64,000 nucleotides of DNA, from the NCBI GenBank assembly GCA_019828565.1, contig JAHDYR010000002.1, forward strand, positions 310,001-374,000, read 5' to 3'. The DNA comes from Carpediemonas membranifera BICM (Eukaryota; Protista; Fornicata). Of the stretch, positions 1 through 53,864 are shown piece after piece (the first letter of the stretch is position 1; the number at the start of each line of letters is the position of its first letter). The position numbers were made by a program, and so were the translations under genes. The notes below the pieces were generated by a model. The model saw nothing but the letters and a program-made list of their open reading frames with translations, did not search any database and was not told the DNA's origin.

Positions 1-463
1 CGATCATTCTCGACGTTGTGGTCTCGCTGTGGCCAGAAACAACCCAGAATGTCTCGAAATTGGCGAATTCTGCAGCCAACTGTTGCAGTATGGAGCCGAG
101 GTGGGTCGTCGAGACGAAACTGACGGCAACCGTGGTGAGCCACTCGTCGCTGACGAGATCGAGGATGGCCTTCATGCGCTTGTGGTACCCCTCGGAGCCA
201 GCAAGCCCGGTGACAGTGAAGACCGGGTTCGCACAAGTAGGTGCTTCGAAGCCATGGACTGGCTCGAGCAGGATAACGATGCGGCGGTTCACAAGCTTGC
301 TCAGGGTGAAGGGGCAGTCATGCGTGTACCTGATTCCGTCATATTCCTTCAGCCCTTGGTTGCGAAGGTCAGAACGCGGCCTAGTGATTCCACAGACGCA
401 TTCATACGTGAGAGGATGGTCGCTGATGCGTCTGGTACCGAATTTGCCAAATTTCCTCTCCAT
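1..463 (-). CDS. Hypothetical protein, runs off the window edge (MERKFGKFG...FWVVSGHS)
   Basis: Manual translation: open frame from ATG 463 to base 1, divergent from the SET gene. Not in the ORF track because there is no stop in the window. Confidence 0.5.
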   Translation of the reverse strand, partial: MERKFGKFGTRRISDHPLTYECVCGITRPRSDLRNQGLKEYDGIRYTHDCPFTLSKLVNRRIVILLEPVHGFEAPTCANPVFTVTGLAGSEGYHKRMKAILDLVSDEWLTTVAVSFVSTTHLGSILQQLAAEFANFETFWVVSGHSETTTSRMI

Positions 464-649
464 TTGGCAACTACCACTTTTTTTTTCCAACACTGGTAGT
501 TGGCCGAACCAGCTATAGGGAAGGATATGGACCACAATAAGCAAGCATTCTGGTGTTACAGATAAGATATTGTATGTGTGTCCTTTACGGTGTGAGACGG
601 CCCCATCAATCCCGAGAAATACCGCGTGTCCGTTTGCAAAAAAAATCAG

Positions 650-1459
650 ATGGCGAGAAGAAAGGCGCTCCCACCAAAGCCGCAGCCTGGGGGTATCAGA
701 ATACCCATTACGTCCACTGCGGGCAAGACGCCGCCGTCTGCGCCTTCAAATGATTCTCAGGAGGATTCCTCAAGCGAAGATTCCATCATTGAATCCGTTG
801 TGCATACTCAGGCACTGCATCCGGATCTGGTCGCCGCGATCTACCCAAACACTCCCGAGGAGTCGATCAGGGAGCTTAAGGAGGCCGAGAAGGACCTTCC
901 TCCCCTCGAACCCCCGAGTTGGTTATCCACCCGGCTGACCCACCCCTCCATTGCCGTTGAGGTGCAGCCTTGTCTGGCTCCCCGACCACACGGACGTGGG
1001 TAGAGGCCTCATTGCAACTGCCGCAATTGAGCCCGGAAAGCTCCTCGGCATTTACGCCGGTAGGATTGTGTCCGACGAGGACTACCACGCGAATAACAGC
1101 AACATGGTGTTTGTTCATTGTTCATTATGCCTTTACACAGCATTTCATTCGACGCTAGCAACCTTCACGTCGACGCCGGCGAAGGTGAAGGCATTGGTGT
1201 ACACCTCATCAACCACAGTGAGAGTGACACCAACTGCCAGTTCACCAACCGTTTGCTCAAGGACCTTCCAGTCCTTGCGGTTGAGTCGACGAACGTCATT
1301 CAGGCCGAAGAGTTTCTTCGTATCAGTTACGGCGAGATCTTCTTTGATGCGGGTGAGGTCTTAACCATTGCTAGGTTCCCGAGTCTGCCCATTTCTCATC
1401 CAAACTATCTCACAAGGTTCCTGGAGCAGTATCCGGCACTCAAGAAGCGGAAGAAATGA
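650..1459 (+). CDS. SET-domain lysine methyltransferase-like protein (intron 1109-1140; +1 C frameshift near 981)
   Basis: Motifs DVGRGLIAT..IEPGKLLGIYAG, HVDA, HLINHS and EEFLRISYG. Removing the 32-nt GTTTGT...TTTACACAG intron joins the two SET halves in frame. Confidence 0.8.
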
Positions 1460-1485
1460 ATTAAAATGTCAAAACATCTCTTTTT

Positions 1486-3664
1486 TTACTCGGGAACTCC
1501 ACGCTTAACGTCCTCGGCATCAACAACTCTCTTTTCGCGATCCTTATCGACTGCCTTGCGCTTGATATAAGTCGTATGAGCCTTTCTCTTACCACCCTTT
1601 GAACGTTTGCGGACAAATAGCGTCGCATGCTCATCCTTGACGACCACAATAGCTTGCGCCGCAGCCACATCTTCATCAGATCCACGCCGGACCATGCCGG
1701 ACTCATAAACTTCCGTCAAATGCATCCGCACAATATACTTGTCATGGTACGTCAACATCTTGACCCAGATAACGACTACAGTCTTGCTTTTCAGAGCTGA
1801 CCAGGCCATGACACCAAAGTTGCTGTACCAATCAGTGGCATCGTCGAACATCAGGGTGGGCACGAACACGTTAGACGTCTCAAGCCTCAGCCTCTCGCCA
1901 GCATCGGAGAATCCCCAGGCGCGCACCTCCTCCCTCACTGCTGCCACTTCCTCTGCCGCAAACTTCTTGTCGAACTCGCCATTCTCAACCTTCTGCAGGC
2001 AGTAGCCGATGCACAATCCATCCGGGTTGACTGCAATCTTCCGCCAACTCTTACGATCTTTGAGAACTCGCTCGCCTACCTTGTCGTACTCCACGTCGAT
2101 GTACTTCTGCCTATCAACGTCGCTCCGTAAGTATATCTGCATAGGGGGAACATTGGCAGGCGTCGGAGAGTGCTGTTTGATGATAGCCTTCATCTCTGGC
2201 GACAGACCGAGGTCGAGGGGTGGGACCGTTATGAACTTCTGGCCCCCGTACCTCATCATGGTGCTATTGATCCGAGTCCATAAGGCTCCAGTCACATTGT
2301 TCCTCTGGAACAGTACCATCAAGGCAGCGAGAGGAACGTAGCGGTCAAGCTCCACTGTTGCCTCCTCGGCGCGCCTGACAAGCTCAGCCCAGTTGTCCTC
2401 GAGTTCATCGGCGAGCGCTTCAAGCCCAGCCTCACTCGCCCGTGCCAACTCTGCTTGAGTAAACTGATGGATCGCCTGATCCTCGGCCTTCTGCTGACCT
2501 AACTCAGCTTCAAGTCTCTTCTGGGACTCCTCAGACTCTCTGTTAGCCTGTTCAAGCGCCTCCCTCGCCTCCCTCTCCTCAGCAAGCCGTTTTTATCAAG
2601 GGCTCGTACTGCTCCAACAAGCGCACAGACTCAGGGACATCATCAAGGCCTGCAATGGTGTCGTCTAGCTGCTGAAGGAGAGAACCAACGGTGTCTGTGT
2701 CGTCCACATCGGACTCTACGTCGATGTCTTGATCAGTCTGGGGCAAAGGAACGCCGTCACCCCTGCATGGCGGCCGGTTCAGAGTGGTCATCAGACTCGG
2801 ACTCGTCAGTGTCGGAAAATTCATCGTGTGTCGTGGACTCTGCGTCGACAACCGGAAGCGGCTGAGGGGCAGCAACGACGGAAGAAGGCTTGGTGGCTGC
2901 TGCTGAGCGATCCTGGGCCCGGACTAACTCCTCTTGGACCTTCATCAGAGCAGCAGTCGATGAGGCGAGCTCCTTCTCAAGACGAGCGATCTTCCTCTTC
3001 AGAGGAGCTGACGGATCGAGCGAACCGATCTTAGCCAACTCCTCGGCCAGCTTCTCTGAGCCAGCGAAGGACAGCTTCTTGCTGAGCTGGGCGTGGGCGA
3101 TAAACTGGCCAAATTGGCCTGCCGGAACACGAGAATCGAGTTTCTTCGAGTCCTTGTGGCGCAACACAAGGTGGAATGCGCGGTAAATCTCAACCTGCTT
3201 CTCAACAGGGGAGCGAGTCGACGCCGACTAGAGCCTTATGAACAGATTTGGCGGTGAAGTGGTCACAAAACTTCCGTCGGAATGCCTCAATTGTGTCGGG
3301 AGAGTCAAAGTCGACCTCGCAGAGGTAGTTGCGGTTAGTTGCGTCACATATCGCGCGTAGTTTGGCAACTCCATAGTCGTGAACGTGCTGGCTTAAAGTG
3401 CGCTTCAACGGGAACCCGAAAACAACGTTGATCGTACGAATGCTGATCATACGGACGCAAACGAAGAACAGAGGGTCATCAGAGACGATGCCGTGATCTT
3501 GCAGCCAGGTTATACGGCTCTTTGTGGACGAAAGGGCGTCGTATGCACGGAATGAATCATCTGTGTAAATAGGACCGTGAAAATGAAAGTGACATACCAG
3601 AATCGTCAGGAGCAAGCATTGTCTCCTTCAGTTTGCCGAGATAGATGATGTCTTCGTTAACCAT
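1486..3664 (-). CDS. Coiled-coil protein with C-terminal OTU-like cysteine protease (intron 3561-3597; three +1 homopolymer frameshifts)
   Basis: NPDGLCIGYCL (catalytic Cys) and EHATLF (catalytic His). ORFs 3202-3615, 2757-3167, 2579-2875 and 1486-2448 join by removing one base each. The intron reads GTATGT...TTTACACAG. Confidence 0.7.
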
Positions 3665-3864
3665 TGTCAATTTGGTCCTCAGAAGACTTTCTCGAAAAAT
3701 GAAATACGTTTTATCTCAATAAATATTGCCAGCTGTCATGTAAATACCTCCGATCAGCCATAAAGACCCAAGAGCTACCCCTTGGCCGATTTTCAGCTCA
3801 TTCTGCACCTGCGCTGTTTTGGCCGTTTTTCGATGGGCATCTCCTCGCTCCATTTTTCGATTTT

Positions 3865-3929
3865 TGTCAATTTGGTCCTCAGAGGACACAGATTAAATTT
3901 TTCAGTGTCCTCTGAGGACAACATTGACA
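3865..3929. repeat. ~65-bp hairpin (GTCCTCAGAGGACAC / GTGTCCTCTGAGGAC) between divergent genes
   Basis: Read directly. The left-arm start TTGTCAATTTGGTCCTCAGA is also present at ~3664, at the OTU start codon. Confidence 0.8.
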
Positions 3930-4346
3930 GGATTTGTAGCTTATCCATGGCCAGAAACTGAAATCGCTGAAAAGCTCAGAGACGTCGTTATATCATCTAT
4001 AACGGCATCTCTGAGCTTTTGGGCGCACGGTTTCATCCCTGACGTGGAGATCGATGGTGGTGAAAATGAAGAATTGACTAGGAGAGCTCTACGCTTGCAT
4101 GCAGCCTTCTATTAGGTTGTTGATGTTGGTTATATGCTTCTTTTTCGTTCTCGATGCGTGTGGATGAGTATTCTGTTGCAAGATTCATTTTGATGGACTG
4201 ATGTTGGTTATAGAGGATAAAGGCACCAGAATGGATCATATGCATGCTATAAACCCGTTCTGTGCCGTTGGAATACCATAGCTGCGCAGCAATGTCGAGA
4301 GTCACAGTTCATTTCACATTTTCACACGCATTTTAAGGAAACAACG

Positions 4347-5109
4347 ATGGCAAGAAGTAAACAAGGCAATATACAGGCCACTGAAGCTCAAAAGGAGAGG
4401 AGAATGGCTCTTGGCAAGAAAGCGCAGCAAAAGAGCCAGAGCAAGTCCAACAAGTCCACGAAAACAGCCCGAAAAAGCTCACAAGACGCCCATCGAGATC
4501 GTTCAGACCTTTATCAGCAATTTCCTCCTTAATAATGACGATATTACCCGCGCAAACGGATGGGTTGTCGACTTCAGCCAGAAGTTTGCCGCCGAGGTCC
4601 CTAAGATGAAAGTAGCCTCCTTGAAGAAGGACAAGCTCTACGGCAATCTCCAGTCGGTCGAAGAGATCAGCCGCAAGTGGCAGGGAGGCGGTGATGAGGA
4701 CAAGCGTCACCGCTTCAAGGCTCTCCTCAGTCTTGACGCCCAGACAGATGAGCTGGACACGGACGACCCACTCATCGCGACTGTCCGCGAGATGGATGAT
4801 GCCTTTCACCGCATTCCCATCGCCTACCGGGCTAAGGTCCATGCCTTCGCTGCTTCATCGTGCGGTGTGACGGTCGATGACGTCAAGCTCGTCCTGAGCA
4901 AGCCTTGCCGTGACCGCGACGCGGATCTCATCTTCGCCAGACCCACCAGAGTTCTGAAGAAGGAGGCTAAGACACTCAGTCAGCTCACTTCTGTCATTGC
5001 GAAGCGGAATGCGGAACGTGCTGAGGCTGAATCGCGTGATGTGCTGCGTCGCAAGGTATACCAAGCCATCATGAATTACTACTTAGAGTGTTCGGCACAG
5101 GAGCTATAA
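4347..5109 (+). CDS. Hypothetical basic protein (+1 A frameshift near 4475)
   Basis: ORFs 4347-4532 and 4411-5109 join. Lys/Arg-rich N-terminus; no recognised domain. Confidence 0.55.
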
Positions 5110-5133
5110 ATTCTTGTTTTATTTTCATTTCAT

Positions 5134-6059
5134 TTACACTTCTTCGTCATCCTCAACGGAAATATTCCATTCACTGTCCCAGAAGTTGGCTTTCTTCTCC
5201 TTACGCATCTCGGTCCTCGTTTCCTTGATCTCTTTGACCAGCGTGAAAGAACGAAGGTTGTAATGGCGGATAATCATCAACTTCTGCCTGATTCGGGTGA
5301 CGTTAGGCCGTTTTGCCGCACGTTCACGGCGCACGGACACACGGGTGCGTTCCACGAACGAGTCAACACTCCTCTTGTCGGAAGCAGGCATCCCATGAGC
5401 GTGCTGATCAAGTCTATTACCATGGTTGGTCACGCGGATCAACGTAGAGCCTTGCATTATCATCCCACAGCACTCTGTCAGGCTCTTGCCGAGGTTGGTC
5501 CACTTGTTGGGACCCATCGTGCCCTCCATCGTGACAATGGCAAGTGGGTTGCCCCCCGTGTCCACCAGCTGCTCGACCTGCGACGGGTCCGATGACTCCT
5601 TGAGGCCAAAGGACGCATACATGTCCTGGAGTCGCTTGTCGCACTGCAGTCGGACGAGTTCTTCGGCAGATGCTATGCTAAGAAGCACCCTCGCGAACCC
5701 AAGACCTCTGCAGGAGACGGCTGTCCGTAAGCCGATGACAAACCGCTCCTGGTGCAGTTGTCCGCTCAGGGTCTGCCCCTCCCTGTACGACTCGCGGAAG
5801 AGAAGGCATGCAGCCTTGATGTTGTCCATCTCAACCCCACGAATTGCGATGAGACTGTGTTAACAAGAAGTGTAGTGGGTCTGACATACATGACGAATGA
5901 GTAGTTCAGACAGTCGAGGTTCGAAGTCGCCAGATCTCTGTTGAAGAAGGCCCTGACAGACGGCAAGAGCTCAGACTTGTCTGAAAGCTTGACATATTGA
6001 ATATAGGCCTTGTGTTGCGATAAATTCATCGTCAGCCATGTCGGAAGTGGCGTTTCCAT
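5134..6059 (-). CDS. GNAT-family acetyltransferase (intron 5855-5889)
   Basis: GNAT motif A LRTAVSCRGLGFARVLL and motif B LQDMYASFGL. The 35-nt intron GTATGT...TTAACACAG joins the exons in frame. Confidence 0.7.
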
Positions 6060-6182
6060 TGTTTTTCACCAAACAAGTGACGTAATGTGAAAATTGTGAA
6101 ACTACCAATGTTGAAAAAAAAATTGGTAGTTGGGGGAAACACACCAAATGGGATGTACTGACCAATAAAACTCCTTTACTCA

Positions 6183-8721
6183 CTACTCAGCGCGTGCATG
6201 ACCGCAAATGCAGCAAACAAGCTCCTCACCCATGTCTGCCAACTCGCAAACCATCACCCCAGACTCTTCGTCCCATGCCAAAGCCGTATAATCGTTGACG
6301 TACTGCCACATCTCGTCAACGAGCTCCTGGAAGAGGCGCACCACCGCCGCCGTGGCATGGAATTGGTGCCTTGCCTCCATGTGGCTGCGAATGGCGAACC
6401 ATGAGCGAGCTTGTCTGCAGCATTGGTGGACTCGGACACGACGAAGCCTGTTCAGCGGGGGGACTGAGTAGTCCTGGCGACCGAACGAGCGAATACCCGT
6501 TAAGAACGTGCAGATGAGGGTGGTCTGCTCGGTCAAACACAGCTTCTCGATCATGGCCGACCTGTGCAACTCGGCTCGGACCTCCTGGTTCTTGATGAAC
6601 TCTCTCTCAAAGAACTCCTCGAGGAGGTAAAAAAGAGGAATTCGGAGATGATCGTGAAGAAGAGGCTGGGCAGTGAGCCTGCTGTTGACATAGAGTGTCT
6701 GGGCACATGGCTTCTCCGCCTTGTCTGCTTGCCCAGGAGGGAGCAACGCCAGCTTTGTCTGGTGTGCCTGCAGACTGAGCATGACGTGGAACAGGTGGCA
6801 CATGGACGCGGCCAAGAAGTGGAATGCGACTTTGCTGTCGGTGACAGGCTCGGTTGAGTAGTAAAGAGCCTGGAGATAGCCAATGAGTCGCACAATATCT
6901 TGGACGGACTCAGGAAGAGCCTCGTAATCCTCGTTCGTGGTGTTCGCCATGCGAACTCTGGCAGCAGACTGCTCGTTGCACCCGACAGTGCGGTCAATAC
7001 TGCGGTTGGATGACATGCGCTGGAGCTTGCGCTTGTCTACGGCAGTTGCGTTCCGATCAGCGGGGAAGCTGGCGCATAGCCGTGCCACTTGCTCGAGCAG
7101 GCGGTGCGAGTTGTGCATGATCGGAGGACAAAAGACAACTCGCTCCGTGTGGATGACTCGGGGCTCTGGCCGGTTCTCGAAGATGGCCCTCTTGTCGGAG
7201 AAGTTGCCATACTCCTCTTTCGGGTCCTGCACACGGTCGGGGTCGGCCTGCACGGCGTGGAACGCTGCCTTCTGCTCGAGCAAATCATGCAAGGTGACCC
7301 GAGAGTGCGCCGGAATGGGGTGCAGCGCCTTGTGGTCTCGACGGATGCTGTTGAAGGGCTGGGGATAGTGCCCTCCATTACCCTCGATGCCGGATGACAG
7401 CTTCCTGATGGCCGCGTGATCGCCCATGACGATGACTTGGTCGAAGGTGGTGACCTGGTCAGTTCCTCTGATCGGTATGAGGGCTTGATAGATCCGCTCG
7501 ACTTCTTCCTCAACGAGTTGAAGGTTTTCCCTCCTCCGTCAGCTCCTTCTCACCGGCAAGACACTCAACGAGTCGGAAGGGGGGAGTGATGCGGTTAGGG
7601 AACGTGAAGCCTGACGGGTCGTAGATGCGGATCTTGAACGTTGCGGTATGTCCCTTCCATGCGTCGAGCCACAGGAGTAGTTTTAGTGGTTGGAACTCGA
7701 CATGGCCTGGGTCCTGAAGGGCACGAGAGCAACGCTCGAAGTTCGTCTGGTCAGACTCGAGCCACTCCGGGTGAAGCACTGCCTGCTGCAGATAGTACAC
7801 GCCATCGAACCACACCGTTTCCACCTTGTCCCAGGTCGAGCTGTTCAGTCGCTTGCCCAGATGGGCGATACCTACACTGCCTTTGAGGGACTGGTAGTGC
7901 TGGACAGCGTCGGATTCGCTGTCATAGTGGAGGGTGAGCGTCGGTCGCTCCCAAGTGTGGTCGGCGACGAGGTCGTGGTCGAAAAACGGAGTCGGCTCGG
8001 CTCCGTCGGCTACAGTCAAACGGTTCGTGAGCTCAAGTCGCGACTGCGTGCCGGACATGGTACGCCGCCATGTTGTATTGCCTGAGACCGACCTGCACGG
8101 CACGAGATGCTTGACGAAGGCGCGCTCCTCCTCAGTGAGGGCCTCTGAGACACCAGATATTCTGGTCATGTCAATGCCAAGGTCCTTAATGAGCACCTCC
8201 GCGGTCTTGTTCTTCGAGATCGGCTTTCCAAGCCGGCGGGAGATGTTGTTGATGAGCTTAAAGAGCTCTTGGGTCGAGTTGAAGCCATTGCGGACGTACA
8301 TCAGGATCGATGTGAGCTCCATGATTTCAGAAAAGTTGGCGGAGCGCTCCTCTGAGTCGTTGTAGTCCTGCACAGCACGCTCCTGGATGGCGTGGGTGCG
8401 GTAATCGTCCCGTACGAAGACAGGGTGAGGAGGGTGTTGATTTCCGTGTGCGGTTGCGGCACGTTGGAAGGGACGGGAGTCTGCTGGAGGGCGGAAGAAC
8501 CTTGCGTCGTGAATGCGCTGGGAGATCAGGTCCGCCTCCTCCATCTCGCGGACGAGCTGGCAGAATTGCTCGCGCTGAGGTCTTGTTCTGGCGGAGTTGA
8601 GGCCAATTCCGACCATGGCGAAGTAGGTACAGCCAAGAAGGTAATTCATGCGCTCAACTGAGCGTGGCTGGTCATCATATATTGTACCGATGTGGCTCTC
8701 GAACACAATATGAGCAACCAT
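6183..8721 (-). CDS. Transposase of element A (~845 aa, Chapaev/Transib-like DDE; +1 G frameshift near 7530)
   Basis: Motifs WLDAWK, MGDHAA, PPIMH, RTVGCNEQ, LEEFFEREF and terminal CCIC are collinear with the B and C proteins. Confidence 0.75.
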
Positions 8722-9386
8722 GATTTCTGTAGAGTTTAAAAAAACAAGATTTTTGTACAAAAACTAGGCAGGTACATGCGCAACGGTCTGTGAGATAAAT
8801 CAGACAATTTGGCTGTTGCTATAGCTCTATAAGAGCAGCTACAACTGCGCTGCCGGGGTTCCTTCTTCTTCTCTGGCCGTTTCAACACTATTTCACAATT
8901 TCACCAGTTTCACACAATTGGTGAAACAATGTTCAGAACTCCTTCAGTTTATGGACGTTGGCTCCGAAACTAAAGCAGTGTGTGTATGAGAGTGCCTGAT
9001 TAAGATTCATCTGATTTTCATCTGCATTACTTGCGAATTTGCTGTTGTGCTCCTTGTGCACAAAAAAAAGCAAATCTGGATTTGATCTCGAATATTGCCA
9101 TGATGAAGGCGACACAAAATGCTCATTTGCCAACCAGTGCAGCTAGAAGAAAATGGTAAAAAGTTATGGATACTGCATGGGATGAGGCCCCCGTTGATGT
9201 GTTAAACGGCCATGATCGACCGCTCAACGTCAGCGCCTCTTTGGGCACCTTCTGCGGCGGTGGATCATGCCAATTGCCGATCTCAGCTCTATGGAGCTAA
9301 GTGCACTTGAGCTCTGAGCCAAGTCTTCTGATTCCATCTTATCGCCGATAAAAAAAATGCAAATTTTGAGATACAGAAGATTGAAT

Positions 9387-9469
9387 CTGTCCCCCAGAAA
9401 ACCGAACATACTCCGATGATGTATACTGACTATATACCACCGTAGTATGGCCTGCTTTCTGGGGGACAG
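9387..9469. repeat. Subterminal hairpin, 14-bp outer stem CTGTCCCCCAGAAA / TTTCTGGGGGACAG
   Basis: Read directly; inner CATACT/AGTATG pairing is also possible. Confidence 0.8.
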
Positions 9470-42327: not shown

Positions 42328-42491
42328 GCACAGGTAGCTGTGTGAAATTCGGTCTTAAAGTGCATTTCGCGACAGCTAGCTGTGCGTCGCAACGAGAGAA
42401 GTAGCAGTGGAAAACAAGCCAGGACTGGCTTATGAATGGTGTTTATGGACATCAGCTATGCTCCAATCATAAACTCTTCCTCTTTACAATG

Positions 42492-43689: not shown

Positions 43690-43702
43690 AACACGAGTTT
43701 TC

Positions 43703-44921: not shown

Positions 44922-46641
44922 ATGCTAGACTTGTTCACTTGGCTGGAAGAAGCCACTGAGTTCGAGAAGAAGGAGCTAATGACCAAGATCAATGCAGCTG
45001 CAAGCGCTAAAGGCAAATGCGACGTCCTTCGCGCGCTTTTGCTGCCTAGGCGCGATTTACTCGCTACTGTGATCAAGGAACGTACGTTACTGAGCGAAAT
45101 TGTTTACACAGGTGTTAATCTCAAGCGTATTGCCACGTTCTTCCGCCTCACGCGCCAGGAGACAGAAGATATGAAGAAGGACCTTAAGGCGCAGTTTATG
45201 GCGACGATGAAATTGAATGAGGGTGAAAGGGTCACAGGGGAACACAAGAAAACACTGAAGCAGGTCCTCGGCGGGGATACCTTCACGCACCTGTACGACG
45301 GCGAGGTGGAGAGCGCGCGTATTCGGGTGAAGAAGAGCATTCGTGAGGCTAGAATGAAGACAAACGCTAGGCTTGAGTGTGAACTCGCGAAGGAGGAGGA
45401 CGAGGACATCAGGGATTGTACTCGGGTTCAGATGATGAAGCTGGCCGATGAGGAAGACCGAAAGGAGTTGGAAAAGGAGATGGAATACACGCGCGAGTCC
45501 AAGTATGACGTGGTATGGGAGCGAGTGTACGATGAGATCTGCGGTACTCGTCGTGTGCGGGCCCGCAGGGATAACGCCCCCTGTCCCGGCGAGGATCACG
45601 CCGACCACGTGCTTCAGCGCTATCTCTGGGCCGACCAGATCGATACTCAGGCGCTTACTGGCGAGAAGACGTTGACCACGAGACTCCCTGCTGAAGCTCG
45701 AGTCGTACGTCGCGTGACAGCCAGTCTGATCTCTGCTCAGAAGACGGAGATCCAATCTCTCAAGGAGCAGGTCGAGCGGCTGAAGAAGCAGGTGACTGAC
45801 GAGAGAAGAGACCACTTTCTTGAGTGCAGGCGTATCCATCATGAGCATGACGTTGGGTACCTTGCTTCCTGCGATGTTTCGTTCGCCGCCAGCCCCATGC
45901 CGCCACAGTCTGGCACGCTCTCCAGGACTTCCTGCCCCCGACGCGCTACGAACGAGCCCGAGGCCTCCATGTCTGTGAAGCGCAAGGCCCTCTTCATCAC
46001 GCCCGAGAAGGCCAGGCCTGAGGACTCAGAGGAGGAGACAGAGGAGGAGCAGGAGGAGGCGAAGGAGAAGAGGGGTGAGGCAGAAGAGGAGACGGTGAAC
46101 ACATGCGACGCCTGCATCCAGACTGAGCCGGAGACTCAGACTCGCATCACCTCTGAGGCCGCGGTGCAGACGTGCATCAACGTGGAGGCTCTCACGACTA
46201 ACTGTACCGCGATTCATGTCAAGAGTGACGGCAACTGCGTTGCATATTGTCTCCAAGCCATTGAGTTGGGTGGCCGAGTTGATGGCGACTTCGAAAAAGT
46301 GGCAGCGTGGCCTCTGCCAGTCAGTGAAGGCCAAGTACTGGTCTAAGAAGAATGTCACGGAGCGTAGCCTGACAGATCCGGACTCCGGCTACTATAACTC
46401 GAACGCCATCCGAGTCTGGGCAAGGAAGCAGAAGCGGAACATCCTTGTTGTCCAGTCATACGACGGATACAACGGCATGCAAGGCATCTCCGCCATCTTA
46501 TACCTGTTTGATGGCACCACCATGCTTGCACCCGATACAGACTTGTGGGGGTTGACAGATAATTTCGCTATTGTCATCGAAGGCGATCCGGCTCACGCCA
46601 CGCTGTACCAGAAGAAGTGCGAGGTCGTTGAGATTGAATAA
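44922..46641 (+). CDS. Coiled-coil + OTU-like protein (+1 A frameshift near 46296)
   Basis: First ~400 aa nearly identical to 18880-20757. OTU domain VKSDGNCVAYCL...AHATLY. Confidence 0.75.
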
Positions 46642-46684
46642 AGATTTGGATATGCCTTTGTAGTGCGTTCGACTGTGTACGTTT

Positions 46685-47402
46685 AGGAGAAGGCTGAGAC
46701 GGAGAAGAAGGAGGACAAGGAGGTGGAGACAGAGGAGAAGAAGGGTAAGTAGGCAGACGAGGAGGAGCCTGACACGGTGGTGCGTGGGCCGGAAGATGAC
46801 GACAATATGTCAGTCGTGTCGATCAGTGACAACGAGCATGAGCCTGAGCTGGTCTTCGACGTACAAACCGCGATCGACAGGATCCTGACCTGCCCTGCCA
46901 AGGAGATTCACCGTGACGGAGCCTGCATCGCTCATTCGCTCAACGACATTAAGCACGGCCAAGTACTGGGTAAGAATCGAATCAAACATTTCAAAAAAAT
47001 CATCTGAGAGAACACACCGAGGAATCCATGGCCAAAAAGGCCGAGGGCCAGGTCAGGGGCACATGGTGGGACCCTTCCGAGCTGTTCAACGGCCAGGGCT
47101 GGCTGACAAGCACTGCTATCTCGGCTTGGACGCATCTTGAGAAGGAGAAGGTCATGGTCCTGCAGCGCAGAGAAGAGGAAGATGGTCGCATAGTCAACTC
47201 AGCGACTGTTTACGACAACGGAAGGGTCTACCCTCAGGATTTCAGAAGTCTGACTCAACTCAGTGATGCCATCAGGGAGACGGGCCACGAGAAGGTCATT
47301 GTCATTACGGGTAATCATGCCACGGTGTATCTCGTGGCGGAGCTTCTGTCAGATGGCACTGGTGAAGAGAGTGTGCCGAAGACAAGGAAGGGGAGGAAGT
47401 AA
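46685..47402 (+). pseudogene. Orphan OTU-like C-terminal domain with an acidic linker remnant
   Basis: IHRDGACIAHSL ... ISAWTHL ... NHATVY. In-frame stop in the linker and an indel in the A-run near 46995. Confidence 0.6.
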
Positions 47403-47587
47403 ATGGTTTGATGTGTTCGGTTGTCTTTCATCTGTGAAATGAGAACAGGCGTGAGTGTCATGGACACAGATGGCCCGGACAGCGTTGCCTCCGTCTTGGC
47501 ATTTGTTGAGGACAACACAGCTGTAAACGACAATAAGATGAAACAGAAGTAGCAAGCAATGTTTAATAACGTATGAACAGTCCTTTT

Positions 47588-49522
47588 GATGTTGTTTAGT
47601 GATTTTTGTGCATTAACGACCGAGAACAGTGGAGTGCAACGCAGATGTTGGTTATTGATGGTAGATGGCGCGCTTTTGACGACAGCTGGTTGCTTTTGCA
47701 GTATAAAGAACCGCATAGCTGCCACTAGTTCCTTCCAATAATGCTTTCCCGCCATTTTGAGGTTGGAATGAAATTCCAAGCACCGTGCACTTTATGTAAT
47801 TGCCCAATATCAACGCCACCCCCGCCCCCAGCGCCTCCACGCCCCACGCCAACGCCACCTCCGCCCCCTGGCGCTCAGTTCAGGAGATGTCCGGTCGATA
47901 AGCCATAAACTGCACGGATCCACAAACGTGGATTGGCCTGAACGACAGCGCTGAGGCCCAGACATGCACATATACATTCATTTATTCCTGTCTCGCTCTC
48001 TTGCCTGTCTGATCGCGACGTTTGACCCACTCAAATGCCTCATCTGTGAGGGTAGACAGAGACGTCGCGAGTATTCCCAGTCCTAACCTTCCGAATCAAC
48101 GTTCGGCAAGGATCTTTGGGTGTCGTCGTTGAGGTACGACGGCAAGCCCACTCTGAGGTCTCGCATGAGCCCCCGCACACGATGCAACGTCCTGACAGGA
48201 CAAGCGGGGGGTCATGCGTTCTGGCCATAGCTAGCTGGTCCACCTGGCTAGCAGTCAGTGTGCGGGACATGAGCGTACCGCGCGTCTTGCCCGTGTCTTC
48301 GGGCCTGGGCCTCGGCTCATCCAGGTCTCCGACGTCCGAAGTCGTCATCGTTGCCTGCTCCAAAGTGGTGGGCTCCGGCTGAGACCTGACACCTGGCAGC
48401 CTGAGCATGGTCTTACGGCCGCCGCTACGCAGCCTCTCAATCTCATCCTCAAGAATGCTGACCTTCTTCGTCAGAGCATGATGTTCACTTGTCGCAACGA
48501 GCGACACTGGCGACTTAAGCAGCGCGATGAACGCCCTGACGTTATCGTGCAATGGAACCGAGAAGGCCTGGGCCAAGCTCTCGACCAGCTCCAGGACCTT
48601 GGGCAGGGTGTCGGGCTCAAGCTCATTGTGAGCTGCGCGGTTCCGGTACTCAACGAGATCACGAATGATCTTGGCATGGGCTTTGTTGTACGCCGCTCGA
48701 TTGGACATCTCACGAAGGATTCTTGATGAATCCACGTCCTGTTCGAGCTCTTTGCCGAGGAGGTCCTTCTCGGTGCTATTGGGCTTGCACCCGGGGTTAA
48801 ATGCAGGCGAGGCCAAGATCTTCCGCATCCAAGGGACCATCATGGCGAGCAGCTGAAGAACTCGCGCATTATCGCCAAGGATGCGGAGCTGCTCATCGTT
48901 CCATGGTGAAATGAACAGGTGATGATCTTGTCGAGCGGATGATTGCCCTTTGAGAGGTGCTTGGCGATGCTTAGCGCGATATCGGTCCATCCACAACTGT
49001 GGATGACGAGCAATTTAAGGTAGGTGCCGCATCAGTCAATAACCCCGTGCTATCGTGCAATAGAACACAGTTAACACTGCTTTCCATGCGCAGCAACACA
49101 GCCTGTGGCGGAGAGACGCCCGGTATGGACGACACCAGGTGATCCACAAACGTGGATTGGCCAATTACGTCGGCCCCTCCCATCCCGCATCCCTCAGGAT
49201 ACGCAAGCACAAGCTCTCTCCCTGCAGCACCTCTCTGGCGCTCTCTAAAATCGTCGTATAGCGTAAACAGAATGTGCCGCATCAGTCATTCGTTCATTTT
49301 ATTCCACTTATCACTCTTGGTCATCCTCCTCATCACTCACCTCCTCGCGGATACTGACATCATCACGAGCCTCGTCATCCGCGAGTGTCAATGGCTCTGT
49401 AATAGCGCGGGCAGCGTTGGTATACTCACCGTTGAACTGTCGCTGGCCTCTCTGAATGCGAGGAAAGCAATTCACGCACACCGGAACACGACGAGAAGGA
49501 CGCTTCAACATGTCAGTTCCAG
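47588..49522 (-). repeat. Inverted duplication of 33315-35250 (PHD gene 3' fragment, HEPN gene, module R)
   Basis: Identical translations on the opposite strand; the HEPN copy has a +1 G near 48050. Confidence 0.92.
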
Positions 49523-50275
49523 CCTCCGTCTTGGCATTTGTTGAGGACAACACAGCTGTAAACGACAATAAGATGAAACAGAAGTAGCAAGCAATGTTTA
49601 ATAACGTATGAACAGTCCTTTTTGATGTTGTTTAGTGATTTTTGTGCATTAACGACCGAGAACAGTGGAGTGCAACGCAGATGTTGGTTATTGATGGTAG
49701 ATGGCGCGCTTTTGACGACAGCTGGTTGCTTTTGCAGTATAAAGAACCGCATAGCTGCCACTAGTTCCTTCCAATAATGCTTTCCCGCCATTTTGAGGTT
49801 GGAATGAAATTCCAAGCACCGTGCACTTTATGTAATTGCCCAATATCAACGCCACCCCCGCCCCCCAGCGCCTCCACGCCCCACGCCAACGCCACCTCCG
49901 CCCCCCTGGCGCTCAGTTCAGGAGATGTCCGGTCGATAAGCCATAAACTGCACGGATCCACAAACGTGGATTGGCCTGAACGACAGCGCTGAGGCCCAAA
50001 CAGGTGGTGAGACATTAAAAAGACTCATTTGCAATCCATTTACTCAGTCCTCACCCTCTTACCACTTGTCTCGATCTCTGAATCATCCTCTATTGTGTTG
50101 TCCGCATGCTTCTGCTTTTCGGGCGACTCTACATGAGTCACCCTTGCAGTGGACGTGGTTGTGGAGCACCCCCAGTGTCTCCACGTCCGCCACCAGCGCC
50201 AGATCCGCCACCATGCCCTACATCAGCACATTTGTGTATTTACTTTTGTAAATTTGTCCTATTGCTATTGAAGCA

Positions 50276-52843
50276 ATGCGTTTCGAGAACTGGGAAGTCG
50301 TCATCACCTATGGGGCGGACAGTTCTCTTGGATCTATCATCACCGCTGTCTTAGACGAGTTTCTGCTCCGAAACCGCGACAAATCGTTTCGTTTAGACAG
50401 CAAGGAGCAGTGCTTGCGCATTCTCCGAGATTTCCTGACGTCATGTCCACTGAGGGTGACACATAGTGATGCTACGTTACGTAGTGCAGTCGTTAATGCT
50501 GATTGGAGCGCATTGATGAGGAATCACAGCACTGCTCATGTGACTGTTACGCGAGTCGACAACGAGGCGAAGACGAAGAGCCTATACACGGCCATGGCAA
50601 TTATCTGTGCCGTCGAGTTAGGGAAGAATCGCTACGACCGACTCCGCCATGCATTTGTTTCAATGGCCTCCGACATGGGAGTTCGCCTTGGAATTCACAC
50701 TCCACCGGTGGTAGACAGTCTCCAGAATCTTGGGTATGACCTGCTGTCCATCCCAGCCATACGATCTGTTATATCAGACCCAACACTGATCGAGGACGTC
50801 AACGCGTTCACTCCTGAGCAGCCCGATGTCTCTGGGCGTGATGGGGTGTCTAACCAAGAGCTTCAATGTCAAGCAGGAGCCGGTTTCACGCGTAGCGTGG
50901 AAGTCGCGGAGGCTTTTTACGTCCTATATGACCCAACCACCCACACCGACCTGCAAGAGACTCTCGATGAACACGACTGCCTCTTCGCTCACCACTTCGA
51001 GAAGATATCGGGGGAGTCACGGCTATACATTTCGCATGATGATCCATCCAAGCTGCCGGAGATTCAGAGATTATGCCGGAACATGGGCATCATTCCGCGT
51101 GGAACAAAGAAATCTCACCGGATGGTGATCAGCGCTCTGTCCTATGACCCTGTCGCCCAGATTAAGTTCATGCTGAAGTTCCCCGACCGAGTTCAGCGCG
51201 ATATCAAGTCAAGCAAGTTCGTTCAATCCGTCACTATTAACCCGGAGAGCCGACAGGAGGCTTATGGTCTTGAGATGCTCCTATGGTTTGATGGATATCG
51301 GGCCGACTGTACGGCGGTCAAATATCGCATAATTGATCGCGAGGGAGCAGCCCTACCACAGAAGATTACCCCACCCATGACGCTTCTTACATTTCAGGGC
51401 ACAGAGAAGCTCATTCCTTCGTTCTTTGATGATGTACAGCGGCTAATGAACAAGCTCATTGGTATCCCCTTCGCATGTGGTGACAGTTCGTTGCTCCCAC
51501 GCAGCCGTGTTGTCATCAGCCTGCTCGGGATCTGCGGCGATCACAAAGCGTTGCAGATTGTTAGTGGCGTCAAGCGGGGACGATACTACCGCTCTCCATT
51601 CTCCTCCCTACACATGGGAAAGGTCGCAAGCGACCCGTTTGCCAATCGTTGCGATCGCTGGACAATCGCAGATAGCATCCGTCTTCGTGACGCTGGTGGC
51701 GTGAAAGACATGACACGGTTTGGGTCCCGCGATGGTCACCGAGATGTCTGCTGTCTGACCTATGCCAACGAGATAGATGGCCCACTTCACGTGCTCACAA
51801 AGTACGCTGATGTCACGTTCATTCCACCTGTCATGCATGTGAGTCACTATCTTATGAAGGACTTCTGGACGCTGCTTGGCCTTGTCAAGGTTCAACACGC
51901 TGGTCAGAACGTGCACACACTTGAGCAGATTGAAAAGCTGTTCACGCGGACAACTGGCTGCAACGAGCAGAGCTGGAACAGACGAAAGCTCGCGACACTA
52001 GTCAACGAGCACCTTGAGGAGTTTGACCAGTCACTCCAGCCCTTCATACTCCTTACAGCCAAGTTACAGGCGTTGTATTACTCCTCTGACCACGTGACAC
52101 ACCAGACAATCGCTTTCCATCACGCGGCGTCCTTTTCTACGTTCATTATGTTCCATGTCTTGACGTTGTTCTATGACCTTCCATCGAGTCGCTCCTCGGT
52201 TGCTACGACGCTCAATGATGGTCTCAGACTGACTTACTCTCCCAAGTTTACCGGCTCGCTATATCTGAATGCAGTGGTGTCAGTTCTGCCCAAGGTTCAC
52301 TCGAAACTGCGGCTTCCGATGTTCTATTTGCTTGAGGAGTACTTCGAACGTGATTTCCTCATCATCAATGCCCAGTTGCGAGTGGACAAGCATCGATCTT
52401 GGGTTCTCGGCTTCCTGGCTCAGAAGACAATGGTCGGTCGTGTCCTTGCTCACTACACCCGCCGTGGCTCATCGAGAAAGCATGGTATGGTGTTGCCGAT
52501 TGCAAGGCAGTGTAAGTCTGTCACATTCTGCTCGTGTCTATTTGATGCCGACCGGTGTGCCGCCTGGAGAAATCGTCTATTAACTAAGGTACCCAACTGG
52601 GATAGGGAGGCGAGCCAACAGTCGCTGAATGCGCTGTTTAGTGGATGGGTCAAGGGTATCTGTGAGGAGCCGGAGGAGATCCGGGAACTCATCACTGTTG
52701 ACGAGACAGCCAAGACGATTTGTGTAAGGACGGCGGACAGTGGTCTGGATGAGACTCTCTGCATCTGCAATCTGTGCAACAGTGAGCAGCGAGCGGAGGA
52801 GCTGATGAGGAGGACTGGGCACAATCTTCGCCCGAGAAGATAG
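50276..52843 (+). CDS. Transposase of element C (855 aa, intact)
   Basis: Motifs WFDG, ICGDHKAL, PPVMH, RTTGCNEQ, LEEYFERDF and LCICNLC. Confidence 0.8.
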   Translation: MRFENWEVVITYGADSSLGSIITAVLDEFLLRNRDKSFRLDSKEQCLRILRDFLTSCPLRVTHSDATLRSAVVNADWSALMRNHSTAHVTVTRVDNEAKTKSLYTAMAIICAVELGKNRYDRLRHAFVSMASDMGVRLGIHTPPVVDSLQNLGYDLLSIPAIRSVISDPTLIEDVNAFTPEQPDVSGRDGVSNQELQCQAGAGFTRSVEVAEAFYVLYDPTTHTDLQETLDEHDCLFAHHFEKISGESRLYISHDDPSKLPEIQRLCRNMGIIPRGTKKSHRMVISALSYDPVAQIKFMLKFPDRVQRDIKSSKFVQSVTINPESRQEAYGLEMLLWFDGYRADCTAVKYRIIDREGAALPQKITPPMTLLTFQGTEKLIPSFFDDVQRLMNKLIGIPFACGDSSLLPRSRVVISLLGICGDHKALQIVSGVKRGRYYRSPFSSLHMGKVASDPFANRCDRWTIADSIRLRDAGGVKDMTRFGSRDGHRDVCCLTYANEIDGPLHVLTKYADVTFIPPVMHVSHYLMKDFWTLLGLVKVQHAGQNVHTLEQIEKLFTRTTGCNEQSWNRRKLATLVNEHLEEFDQSLQPFILLTAKLQALYYSSDHVTHQTIAFHHAASFSTFIMFHVLTLFYDLPSSRSSVATTLNDGLRLTYSPKFTGSLYLNAVVSVLPKVHSKLRLPMFYLLEEYFERDFLIINAQLRVDKHRSWVLGFLAQKTMVGRVLAHYTRRGSSRKHGMVLPIARQCKSVTFCSCLFDADRCAAWRNRLLTKVPNWDREASQQSLNALFSGWVKGICEEPEEIRELITVDETAKTICVRTADSGLDETLCICNLCNSEQRAEELMRRTGHNLRPRR

Positions 52844-53864
52844 ATAGATGGATAATCGGAGTATGTATATAAAGGGTTCTTTATGTTTACACTATCTTCA
52901 CCAATCTACAGTCAATTACGTCTATTGCGAGCGAAGAACAGCTTTCAGTAAGAAATTTGAGGCAACTGTCAGGTAATTCTTAGTAACGTCGTCGGCAATG
53001 GCGTAATAGTCATCCATTTCAGTCAAGTGACTCAGCTTAACGCGCATTTGCTTGATTTCGGCGATAAACTCGGCCCGCTTCATTCGTTTGTCATAAAGTG
53101 CATTCCGGCCATATCACAAGTTTTCTTCATCACAAGGCACGCACGGGGGTGTAAGCGGGACCGAGGCTACCACCACAGCCTCTTCTGAGCCGATGGATAC
53201 CTTTTGTTGATTTGCCAGAATTGACCAAACGACGAGGAATGCTTGATATGCCGCGTATGGATGATTTGAAGAAGAACTGAAGGTGAAAGACAAAGATCAT
53301 AGAAATATACATCATGCGGCTCACTTTTTGGAGACATTGGAGGTAAATTAGCTTTTAGGATCGTTTTTCGTTTGCCAGGCAAAGTTTTGAGTGTTTTCTC
53401 GAGAATACTCGATGCCGTATGCAATCTTGCTGCTATTTGATGCAGAACAAAGGTTGTTATGTGACACAGATGTTCTCACTTGCTTTCGGCCTTCTTTGTT
53501 GGCGAGCAAAAGCAAACTTCTTTGGGAGCAATTCCCAAAAATCGCATCTTTACGCACCCAGGAAATTTTATCTCGGCATACTGGACCAGTGGGGGAGGCA
53601 CGGCAGTCTATCCCGACCCTAGATGAACCATGAGACAGTTTTTCGACGAGAGTTTGTGCGATGCCACTGACTTCGCGAGTGAGGGTCTTCAGCATGTTGT
53701 ACGGATGTCTAAACGATGCCTTGTGCAAGTGCAAGGCGTAATACGCTGTAGTTTAATTGTTTGAGCGCGTTCATTTTTTCTTGCAATCGTCCTTTTTTCA
53801 TGTATTCCGGGACTTATTCCGGGACTTAAAGTCCCGGTTAAAGTACCAGAAAAAACAGCATGAA

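Follow-up and report, generated by a model that had tools for sequence, protein, structure and literature searches.

Large cut-and-paste DNA transposons of Carpediemonas membranifera with candidate chromatin- and ubiquitin-directed accessory genes

We analysed a 64,000-nucleotide stretch of the Carpediemonas membranifera genome (the window), in which an earlier note had described three transposons, here A, B and C. Their extents and ends are as follows:

1..9807, minus strand: element A, the part within the window, with its right terminus CATACTGT ending at 9807
13120..24965, plus strand: element B, 11,846 bp, target-site duplication (TSD) GT
13120..13193, plus strand: left terminal inverted repeat (TIR) of B, 74 nt, three GACTTNAAGTC palindromes
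24892..24965, minus strand: right TIR of B, 74 nt, 99% complementary to the left, three GACTTNAAGTC palindromes
31826..53862, plus strand: element C, 22,037 bp, TSD AA
31826..31867, plus strand: left TIR of C, CATGCTGC..., one GACTTAAAGTC palindrome
53821..53862, minus strand: right TIR of C, CATGCTGT..., one GACTTAAAGTC palindrome

Element A starts 2,329 bases before the window; as a whole it occupies G000:C3:307672-319807 (12,136 bp), has the TSD TG, and is matched by a near-copy on contig C42 (99.5% identity across 11.6 kb). Element C, whose TIRs are imperfect and ~42 nt long, sits within a Ty3/gypsy chromovirus, the integrase of which it interrupts. In all three elements the inverted ends read CATRCTG and the target duplications measure 2 bp, and matching 2-bp TSDs were found in five of the six copies examined. 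Uninterrupted paralogous targets exist for C on contigs C33 and C1, and for B on C39 and at least 15 others, the flanks overlapping by exactly 2 bp in both cases. These empty sites show B and C to be precise insertions and, together with the TIRs and TSDs, bear out the description of three elements.

Whole copies of 20-22 kb are found at other loci with 99.5-99.9% identity and unchanged gene order, and the cargo is therefore part of the mobile unit. Copies sit at independent loci with differing flanks. A, B and C are cut-and-paste DNA transposons, as had been claimed; they are 12-22 kb long and recently mobile, as the TIRs, TSDs, empty sites and near-identical full copies support. Element B is a mosaic, shortened from a larger B-type element; one such element on C62 was traced over ~21.9 kb, its right TIR not being found. 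Shorter B-type forms include one of 6.8 kb that has a TIR at either end and AG TSDs that match, and internally deleted copies of about 3 kb that retain the left end.

Each element contains one transposase gene:

6183..8760, minus strand: transposase of A, frameshifted near 7513-7538, with intact 860-aa versions on C7 and C42
15893..18474, plus strand: transposase of B, with 1-bp insertions near 16208 and 18133
50276..52843, plus strand: intact 855-aa DDE transposase of C, with D339, D422 and LEEYFERDF at 686-694

Within the window the transposase is intact only in C; B-type versions with an unbroken open frame are present on C62 (859 aa) and C6 (870 aa). The protein of C shares 28% identity with that of B (E 6e-40) and 22-28% with that of A (E 3e-34). 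One homologous transposase of ~850 aa per element, as the earlier note had it, is thus confirmed, the A, B and C subfamilies being 22-30% identical. Across the genome, transposase ORFs comprise at least six identical ones plus tiers at 50, 35 and 27% identity. Four motifs are conserved (W-D, DH-A, PPxMHxxH and LEE-FER) and retained in remote homologues; D339 and D422 are likewise conserved.

The predicted order of secondary structure elements is beta1-beta2-beta3-alpha-beta4-alpha...beta5-alpha. The fold matches are indicative only, both AlphaFold models being poor (mean pLDDT 50 and 54): with VIA-align, residues 231-694 of the transposase model matched RAG1 531-962 (Z 10.5, 343 residues aligned, rmsd 4.8), followed by the P element (Z 8.7), BbRAGL (8.7) and Transib (8.3), Foldseek matched RAG1 with E 1.6e-4, and the Atlas shape match was a Plavaka-containing cluster (TM 0.53). 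The structural matches at the top of the list were exclusively DDE transposases or recombinases. We therefore regard the ~855-aa protein as a probable RNase-H-fold DDE transposase, in which D339 would lie on strand beta-1, D422 directly after beta-4, and the catalytic Glu would be one of E687, E688 and E691 in the invariant LEE..FER, after a helical insertion domain.

The CMCT clade comprises EnSpm/CACTA, Mirage, Chapaev and Transib along with Plavaka, ESTA and Lanisha, and its hallmarks are CA..TG ends and TSDs of 2-5 bp (PMC12730594). The Carpediemonas elements resemble it in their 5'-CA..TG-3' termini, in a 2-bp TSD that falls within this range, as in Mirage, and, as far as the models indicate, in a DDE core with an insertion domain and in structural similarity to RAG1/Transib and the Plavaka-containing cluster. 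They differ in that the terminus is CATRCTG, not CACTA, and that the transposases gave no sequence match to Pfam (including Transposase_21), the Plavaka model or RAG1/Transib chains. Further, the C(2)C and H(3-4)H motifs by which CMCT is defined are missing from these transposases, which have the invariant PPxMHxxH and a single invariant Cys; their remote metagenomic homologues P0024, P0027 and P0040 do bear C(2)C and H(3)H. The transposases are best placed as a divergent, hitherto undescribed lineage within the CMCT clade (CACTA/Mirage/Chapaev/Transib) or close to it.

The remaining genes and repeats are the following:

939..1456, plus strand: A, SET-domain gene, in two frames in this copy (hmmsearch with SET profile A3)
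1486..2448, minus strand: A, OTU-like cysteine protease, DGxC motif followed by HATLF motif
5134..5829, minus strand: A, GNAT-like ORF with RGLGFARVLL motif, taken as a lead
14679..15851, minus strand: B, Cys-rich protein with a PHD-like C4HC3 pattern, no Pfam match
18880..20757, minus strand: B, 625-aa protein with an OTU-like domain at its C-terminus, a module shared with C
21722..23276, no strand: B, two arrays of a 40-bp tandem repeat
23614..23907, minus strand: B, remnant of a SET gene, C-terminal end (E 6e-4)
32339..33526, plus strand: C, PHD-like zinc-finger protein, C4HC3 pattern, Pfam PHD E 9e-4 (under the curated cut-off)
33841..34854, plus strand: C, HEPN-like protein with RNRAAH motif
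34810..40914, plus strand: C, ~1.88-kb unit repeated in tandem, with four repeat starts and about three complete units
35290..36102, minus strand: C, SET-domain methyltransferase, closest to G9a/GLP and SUV39
41023..42327, minus strand: C, protein kinase of Ser/Thr type; motifs VIK, HCDIKPDN and DFG; zinc ribbon at the C-terminus
42492..43616, minus strand: C, 374-aa ORF of no assigned function, without matches in Pfam and further searches
44922..46638, plus strand: C, first OTU-like gene, with a frameshift in this copy at about 46327-46343
46807..47399, plus strand: C, second OTU-like gene, in a Cys-motif piece and a His-motif piece
48040..48996, minus strand: C, inverted duplicate of the HEPN-like gene, 100% identical to the 33841-34854 copy

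SET genes had been claimed for A and C. That of C is confirmed, an identical UniRef entry being named SET domain-containing; that of A is frameshifted in this copy and matches profile A3 in two parts (E 1e-7 at profile positions 90-125, 8e-7 at 129-205); and the remnant in B, absent from the earlier list, adds to the claim. Against PDB, the SET profile matched EHMT2 (G9a; 1e-7), EHMT1 (5e-7) and SUV39H2 (4e-3). As for the PHD proteins proposed for B and C, the C4HC3 pattern is present in both, but the Pfam match is below cut-off and limited to C. A homologue of the PHD-like protein of B is present in element A, before the window. SET and PHD-like genes are hence found in A-, B- and C-type elements, even though the subfamily transposases share only 22-30% identity; co-location of SET genes with transposase tiers of 35-58% identity was read from coordinates alone.

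The OTU-like proteases proposed for all three elements are supported by motif and fold, with two genes in C. The gene of A has at least 15 identical genomic copies, the intact ones with open frames of up to 712 aa, and the first gene of C has an uninterrupted 581-aa frame in its copy on C67. The best four rows of the profile search against PDB were viral OTU-fold proteases, and in the fold search more than 20 of the top 25 matches were OTUs, which suggests this fold for the model (best Z 6.0, Foldseek E 0.019). The kinase of C is confirmed by Pfam (E 2e-23), with catalytic loop and DFG intact. The HEPN assignment stands on the RNRAAH motif, where three Pfam HEPN matches fall, all of them weak (E 0.013-0.087). 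For the GNAT-like ORF the ten best named clusters were all acetyltransferases (score 0.89), while searches of Pfam and PDB gave no match. A YR-fold protein, also claimed for C, found no support. The tandem array of C encodes a 310-aa ORF without assigned function (37640-38572, 39517-40449), and in the full C copy on C67 this array is reduced by about 1.96 kb, or about one unit.

That the cargo belongs to ordinary host families outside the elements, a possibility raised beforehand, is not borne out: SET, kinase and OTU genes are multi-copy, on the same contigs as transposase copies, and no ordinary single-copy host gene was recognised among their copies in the genome. Homologues of the SET and OTU proteins outside Carpediemonas were not found, so these are not recent copies of conserved host genes. 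Frameshifts within the window affect two of the three transposases and several cargo genes, and could reflect decay or long-read indel errors. Judged from the sequences, the cargo appears to be retained under constraint: SET paralogues that have diverged to 25-56% identity still have open frames and share 23 invariant residues, and the kinase keeps its catalytic motifs with dN/dS of 0.31-0.62, where a value of about 0.35 means moderate constraint only and may be blurred by recombination between subfamilies.

The explanation we consider quite probable is a single DDE transposon family with its own accessory genes acting on host chromatin or ubiquitin-type signalling. A, B and C would be three subfamilies of this family, whose transposase would bind the CATRCTG-ended inverted repeats (which in B and C carry GACTTNAAGTC palindromes), excise the element and reinsert it via a 2-bp staggered cut. 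The accessory genes would be long-standing element genes rather than random captured fragments, with the PHD-like zinc-finger protein and an H3K9-type SET methyltransferase common to all three subfamilies, and the OTU-like, kinase, HEPN-like and GNAT-like genes added modularly and exchangeable. From this content we infer enzymatic activities, substrates and a direction of effect: the proteins may act on host chromatin or ubiquitin-type signalling to the benefit of the element, by influencing the chromatin of its own copies or of its targets, or by modulating host responses. Because the SET proteins are closest to H3K9 methyltransferases, which set a repressive mark, a simple anti-silencing role, the one proposed in the earlier note, is not the obvious reading.

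It is unlikely that the cargo is instead passenger DNA, host genes captured by chance as in Pack-MULE or CACTA elements, functionless for the element and a toolkit in appearance only. Modules do cross subfamilies, as seen in the OTU module (97-98% identical between B and C) and in a 97%-identical, frameshifted kinase situated ~8 kb away from a transposase that has just 50% identity with that of C, and the frameshifts in several cargo genes of the window would fit; but full-length SET frames persist in many diverged tiers, the kinase remains under the constraint described above, the same kinds of gene recur across A, B and C, and SET and OTU proteins have no homologue found outside Carpediemonas. 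Biological conflict systems often employ HEPN, OTU and kinase domains. The cargo might be a conflict or addiction module without a chromatin role, acting as toxin and antidote or in competition between elements, penalising element loss or attacking rival elements or viruses, with SET and PHD secondary. The duplicated HEPN gene in C and the modular, quickly shuffled gene content agree with this, but the HEPN matches are weak, no paired antidote gene was recognised, and neither a kinase nor a HEPN-like gene was found in A, while every one of the three subfamilies has SET and PHD-like genes; we hold it to be improbable, somewhat more so than chance capture. That the elements arose by segmental duplication or misassembly, or are integrated virus-like elements mobilised by a different enzyme, is very improbable, for although the transposase has no Pfam match, its models are poor and the 100% identical inverted and tandem repeats inside C may signal assembly problems, the TIRs are exact, TSDs and empty sites agree on 2 bp, the loci are independent, the top structural matches are of DDE type, and no capsid, polymerase or integrase gene occurs among the ORFs scanned.

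The combination of SET, OTU, kinase and zinc-finger genes beside a RAG1/Transib-like transposase has not been described previously. The novelty claimed earlier holds for this combination but was otherwise overstated, since captured genes of each kind occur singly in other transposons, and captures of SET, OTU, TET and kinase genes and CACTA elements of 16-20 kb are known (PMC12730594, PMC6431247). In Phytophthora, HarbingerS and MuDR families come with a gene for a SET histone methyltransferase (Kojima and Jurka 2014, cited in PMC12730594). As the citing review presents them, they share with our elements a SET-domain lysine methyltransferase of their own, but belong to other superfamilies (PIF/Harbinger, Mutator) and have this single accessory gene, while in Carpediemonas SET is joined by PHD-like, OTU, kinase and other genes. 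Fungal KDZ, Plavaka, EnSpm and ESTA transposons carry TET/JBP, to which IS3EU adds an alpha-kinase (PMC12730594). There too, genes for epigenetic modifiers (with a kinase in the case of IS3EU) persist as accessory genes and move from one transposon family to another without having termini of their own; the TET/JBP modifier acts on DNA (5mC oxidation), whereas the Carpediemonas candidates would act on histones and ubiquitin-like tags, and no TET/JBP gene was seen in these elements. MULE and CACTA elements encode ULP1 proteases. Helentrons encode an OTU-like cysteine protease (PMC6431247). Both are, like the OTU genes here, cases in which a DNA transposon codes for a ubiquitin-like-specific cysteine protease, but in Helentrons, which are rolling-circle elements, the OTU forms one domain of the Rep/Hel protein, and that of Carpediemonas is a separate gene, sometimes two, in a DDE element. 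Finally, the red alga Chondrus crispus has enlarged En/Spm families, 16-20 kb in size and bearing 4-5 ORFs (Kojima et al. 2013, cited in PMC6431247). In that review's account they are, similarly, CACTA-type DNA transposons grown to about 20 kb through extra ORFs, and it does not report SET, OTU, kinase or PHD content; the host lineage is another one, and the Carpediemonas elements carry 8-12 genes, with a set common to the subfamilies.

Three gene-carrying DNA transposons, A, B and C, three subfamilies of one family, can be delimited in the window, which is G000:C3:310001-374000 of an assembly of 24.2 Mb in 69 contigs; database proteins identical to its products carry the label Carpediemonas membranifera. 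The earlier note had described A as longer than 9.8 kb, B as 11.8 kb and C as 22.0 kb, and all three are borne out by terminal inverted repeats (TIRs) and 2-bp target site duplications (TSDs), A measuring 12,136 bp when followed to its left end.

Limits of the three elements, with the empty sites of B and C (window coordinates unless a contig is named)
right end 9807, with CATACTGT; left end C3:307672, 2,329 bp before the window: element A
13120-24965: element B, 11,846 bp, 74-nt inverted repeats, 99% complementary, beginning CATACTGT
31826-53862: element C, 22,037 bp, ~42-nt imperfect inverted repeats beginning CATGCTG
contig C39:14063/14064, plus at least 15 further sites: empty sites of B
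contigs C33:108081/108082 and C1:1722571/1722572: empty sites of C

The flanks of B and of C are repeated, on both sides, elsewhere in the genome; where such a copy is uninterrupted, the match to the left flank and the match to the right flank have an overlap of exactly 2 bp. These copies are empty sites, and the exact overlap at them demonstrates precise insertion with a 2-bp duplication. Matching TSDs were found in five of the six copies examined (TG/TG for A, GT/GT for B, AA/AA for C, CA/CA for a C-type copy on contig C47 and AG/AG for a B-type copy on contig C6), the sixth being a C-type copy on contig C67 with the mismatched pair AA/TA; at a chance of 1/16 per copy this is, by our own calculation, far beyond chance. 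The elements have the ends expected of DDE cut-and-paste transposons, TIRs (ended here by CATRCTG) and a TSD of fixed length (2 bp), together with empty sites. For the palindrome GACTTNAAGTC, 0.1 occurrences are expected in the window and eight are present, all of them within TIRs, three per end in B and one per end in C; it is a likely transposase-binding site.

Mobile elements nested in one another fill most of the window, and the sole clearly non-mobile gene that we recognised in it is a host-like phosphatase gene. Element C splits the pol gene of a chromovirus at a point in the integrase (pieces 29256-31825 and 53863-54596), and the two intact copies of this chromovirus, on contigs C33 and C1, are the empty sites of C.

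Other features of the window
26190-28958, minus strand: Ty3/gypsy-type pol ORF between B and C, encoding protease, RT and RNase H in 922 aa
29256-31861: chromovirus (Ty3/gypsy) RT, RNase H and integrase, preceding C
53757-54596: chromodomain tail of the chromovirus, beyond C
58280-62353, minus strand: SAC9-type phosphoinositide phosphatase gene; domains: one SacI, two SAC9 GBDL

The sequence into which B inserted (12520-13119 and 24966-25177) has at least 20 near-identical copies in the genome, and from ~25183 there follows another repeat, different from the B target, with more than 20 copies. The interval between A and B (9808-13119) has a G+C of 0.60 and a strong AT skew (-0.24); each strand carries a long ORF (minus, 10117-11394; plus, 11388-12305), neither of which gave a match in a Pfam search.

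The A/B/C family has amplified recently. Full copies of the C type lie at C67:433346-453424 (20,079 bp, 99.6-99.9% identical to C) and, inverted, at C47:26119-47945 (21,827 bp); an A-type copy on contig C42 is 99.5% identical across 11.6 kb, and the left 4.2 kb of C, with its PHD-like, HEPN-like and SET genes, is found in full, 99-100% identical, at least seven times. The copy on C67 is ~1.96 kb shorter than C over a 1.88-kb tandem array, approximately one unit, and repeats inside C may drive internal rearrangement. A large B-type element on contig C62 could be traced over ~21.9 kb, its right TIR not being found; by comparison with it, the B of the window reads as a shortened mosaic, whose left 5.7 kb and right subterminal 1.2 kb match the C62 element, and the OTU module of B is 97-98% identical to the module in C-type elements. 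A 6.8-kb B-type derivative on C6 has both TIRs and matching AG TSDs. Internally deleted B-type derivatives of ~3 kb, in which element positions 1-1625 are joined to 5314-6670 and the left end is retained, were found at at least four loci (G000:C3:38838-41844, C67:884032-887041, C1:564876-567880 and C39:874778-877781). These last, known here by their left ends, are candidate non-autonomous copies moved in trans. The family also bears on the annotation of this genome, in which many of the predicted SET, kinase and hypothetical genes belong to transposons and not to the host.

Other repeats occur within the elements. In B a 40-bp tandem repeat forms two arrays (21722-22329 and 22897-23276), and related arrays are present in B-type elements on contigs C10, C50 and C6. 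In C, the 1.88-kb tandem array and repeats occupy regions 34810-40914 and 47487-50129, a 1.47-kb HEPN segment is found in 100% identical inverted copies (33315-34786 and 48051-49522), and there are several shared junction repeats of 0.2-0.5 kb. The full copies of the C type vary in length over the tandem array.

That A, B and C share one homologous transposase of ~850 aa was confirmed by identities of 22-28% between the C protein and the other two (E 5e-9 or better).

Transposase and accessory genes of the elements (window coordinates)
50276-52843: C, transposase ORF, 855 aa, the only intact transposase copy in the window
35290-36102, minus strand: C, SET ORF, 270 aa; UniRef lists the identical protein under the name SET domain-containing
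41023-42327: C, kinase ORF, Pfam Pkinase 2e-23, with VIK, HCDIKPDN and DFG
1486-2448: A, OTU-like gene
18880-20757: B, ORF whose C-terminus is OTU-like

The transposase of C is 28% identical to that of B (E 6e-40) and 22-28% identical to that of A (E 3e-34 and 5e-9); frameshifted genes were searched piece by piece. The A copy in the window is frameshifted and the B copy has two 1-bp insertions; the B-type copies on C62 and C6 are open over 859 and 870 aa. The frameshifts in the window genes may be assembly errors. Elsewhere in the genome there are at least six identical full copies of the C transposase and further tiers at ~50, 35 and 27% identity, whose open frames are 800-900 aa long. Invariant in nine paralogues are W337-D339, D422-H423-A425, PPxMHxxH (517-524), RTxGCNE (558-564) and EExFERxF (687-694).

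An HMM search, exhaustive over 1.84 billion representatives, returned 43 proteins, 17 strong and ~25 remote, the latter mostly metagenomic hypothetical proteins matching the core at E 1e-9 to 5e-4. The W-D, D, DH, PP-H and LEE-FE motifs remain conserved when these are aligned. In three of them (P0024, P0027 and P0040) a C(2)C motif stands ~20 residues past the second Asp, and P0024 additionally has H(3)H ahead of the Glu motif. Remote relatives of the core occur in a very fragmented NCBI assembly (locus L062, GCA_024449875.1) and in metagenome loci (L059-L061), and no SET or OTU neighbours were found on their short contigs. Pfam holds no family for the Carpediemonas transposases, and no domain was detected in the 20 remote homologues that we searched; Transposase_21 has no sequence-level match to the Carpediemonas proteins, the Plavaka model matches nowhere in the genome, and two transposase profiles (A1 and A4) matched neither RAG1/Transib nor any other transposase chain in the PDB. 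A word-based protein search with the transposase, SET and OTU queries returned Carpediemonas proteins only.

The AlphaFold model of the transposase is of low confidence (mean pLDDT 50), with the RNase-H strand order visible in it, and DDE recombinases head its fold-search results. By VIA-align it superposes best on the RAG1 core (Z 10.5, 343 residues, rmsd 4.8), followed by the P element and BbRAGL (Z 8.7 each) and Transib (Z 8.3); Foldseek matches it to RAG1 at E 1.6e-4, and an Atlas shape search found a cluster partly annotated as Plavaka (TM 0.53, residues 325-614). In this model (pLDDT 50) D339 lies on beta-1 and D422 immediately past beta-4, and a putative triad of D339, D422 and an acidic residue within LEE-FER is conserved as far as the remote homologues. 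Model residues 231-694 align with RAG1 531-962, so that the match ends at residue 962 of RAG1, its catalytic Glu.

Hallmarks of the CACTA/Mirage/Chapaev/Transib (CMCT) clade are CA..TG termini and TSDs of 2-5 bp (PMC12730594). By this criterion A, B and C resemble the clade, having 5'-CA..TG-3' termini and a TSD within that range, but the C(2)C and H(3-4)H motifs are absent from all nine Carpediemonas paralogues, and the searches above found no sequence similarity of these transposases to a CMCT member family, the leads being structural and feature-based. Given CMCT-type termini and TSDs without the zinc motifs or a sequence match, we assign the family to no named superfamily and regard it as a divergent, undescribed lineage that falls within CMCT or next to it. 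The RAG1/Transib-CACTA group would thereby gain a very divergent branch without the usual zinc motifs.

Among the accessory genes (cargo), the SET and kinase genes that had been proposed for C are both confirmed. Seven transposon-borne SET paralogues, 25-56% identical, share 23 invariant residues, among them those of GxG, (H/R)(I/V)ND and (F/Y)LS..Y..YW. Their profile (A3) finds EHMT2/G9a as its best PDB match (E 1e-7 across 134 residues), followed by EHMT1/GLP, a Legionella SET effector, SUV39H2 and EZH2. The proteins have Asp in place of the NH His and lack the post-SET Cys cluster; in fold and motifs they are putative SET-domain lysine methyltransferases. The SET gene proposed for A is recovered by the same profile (E 1e-7 and 8e-7) but is divided between two frames in the window copy; in B the profile finds a SET remnant, and in the large element on C62 two SET genes. 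The kinase of C has the catalytic loop, DFG and beta-3 Lys of a predicted eukaryotic protein kinase; a Gly-rich loop was looked for in this ORF and none was seen. Its matches in the genome number more than 100, in tiers from 100% to 34% identity.

The other cargo assignments of the earlier note stood in part. OTU-like genes, of which C has two, carry D-G-x-C, A-W and H-A-T/E-(L/V)-(Y/F), the Cys motif and the C-terminal His motif being present in all copies in A, B and C. The first OTU gene of C is frameshifted in the window and has an uninterrupted 581-aa frame in the C67 copy. A fold search with the OTU model (pLDDT 54) returns OTU deubiquitinases almost exclusively: they make up more than 20 of the best 25 VIA rows, and the best matches of this low-confidence model include a Wolbachia OTU (Foldseek E 0.019; VIA Z 6.0, 120 residues, rmsd 4.2). 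Pfam gave no match to these proteins, and in the PDB search with the OTU profile the top four rows, nairovirus OTU domains and an arterivirus PLP2, have E 0.35 or worse. The PHD-like proteins of B and C have the C4HC3 pattern, but Pfam PHD matches only that of C, below the cut-off (E 9e-4, 19.6 bits against 24); a homologue of the B protein is encoded in the part of A that precedes the window. The HEPN-like gene, of which C has two copies, 100% identical and in inverted orientation, has an RNRAAH motif and three HEPN Pfam matches, all below their cut-offs (E 0.013-0.087). For the GNAT-like ORF of A, which seems too short N-terminally, an RGLGFA motif and the ten best named Atlas clusters, all acetyltransferases at 0.89, are leads towards this assignment, and Pfam and PDB searches gave no match. 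The YR-fold protein claimed for C found no support: in Pfam and PDB searches no ORF of C, those of 310 and 374 aa included, matched an R-H-R-Y core or a protein of the phage-integrase type.

Taken with the copy data, several observations argue for long-term retention of cargo within element lineages, with modules apparently exchanged between them. The OTU gene of A has at least 15 identical genomic copies. On several contigs (for example C14, C15, C54, C11, C1, C18, C13 and C42) a diverged SET tier and a diverged transposase tier are 4-18 kb apart, as read from coordinates, on which, and not on delimited elements, the subfamily-wide cargo tables are based. No homologue of the SET and OTU proteins was detected outside Carpediemonas by word-based search, and pairwise dN/dS among six kinase variants is 0.31-0.62, mostly ~0.35. 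The family offers a clear natural case of one transposon maintaining several predicted chromatin- and ubiquitin-type enzymes under selection, which makes the role of transposon-encoded histone writers and deubiquitinases, be it silencing evasion, self-restraint or targeting, directly testable.

In the mechanism that we envisage, the transposase would bind the TIR palindromes and carry out cut-and-paste transposition in the manner of RAG1/Transib-CACTA, and the products of the SET, PHD-like, OTU and kinase genes would benefit the element by acting on chromatin or on signalling of the ubiquitin type. The earlier note had proposed an anti-silencing role; because the SET proteins resemble H3K9 methyltransferases, self-marking, targeting or restraint would be at least as plausible. 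A fuller and rather doubtful reading is that the family is a new superfamily-level DDE lineage akin to RAG1/Transib-CACTA, with a stable core of transposase, PHD-like reader and H3K9-type SET writer plus OTU and kinase modules, through which the element would install or edit chromatin or ubiquitin marks, for example on its own copies or targets. If true, the transposon would have an epigenetic programme of its own, and this in a protist whose DNA-processing machinery is already known to be unusual.

Captures of such genes are known: SET in HarbingerS and MuDR of Phytophthora, TET/JBP in KDZ, Plavaka, EnSpm, ESTA and IS3EU elements and alpha-kinase in IS3EU (PMC12730594), and OTU in Helentrons (PMC6431247); En/Spm elements of Chondrus reach 16-20 kb with 4-5 ORFs (PMC6431247). 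The novelty claimed for the family is thus overstated. In the literature searched we found no DDE element in which SET, PHD-like, OTU and kinase genes come together with others, and do so across subfamilies, no description of this transposase lineage and no account of such transposons in Carpediemonas. The family adds well-delimited, apparently recently active large DNA transposons to the little-studied metamonads.

Finally, the C-terminal tails of the kinase (41026-41340, minus strand) and of the HEPN-like protein (34492-34851, plus strand) have in common an RCIVCG zinc-finger-like motif (E 0.002, a single comparison), which may be a common targeting module. A weak match of the HEPN tail to uS12 (E 0.03) was judged to be due to chance. 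Relatives of this tail at 35% identity are found in ORFs of B-type (loci L035-L037, contig C62) and A-type (loci L038-L039, contig C42) elements.
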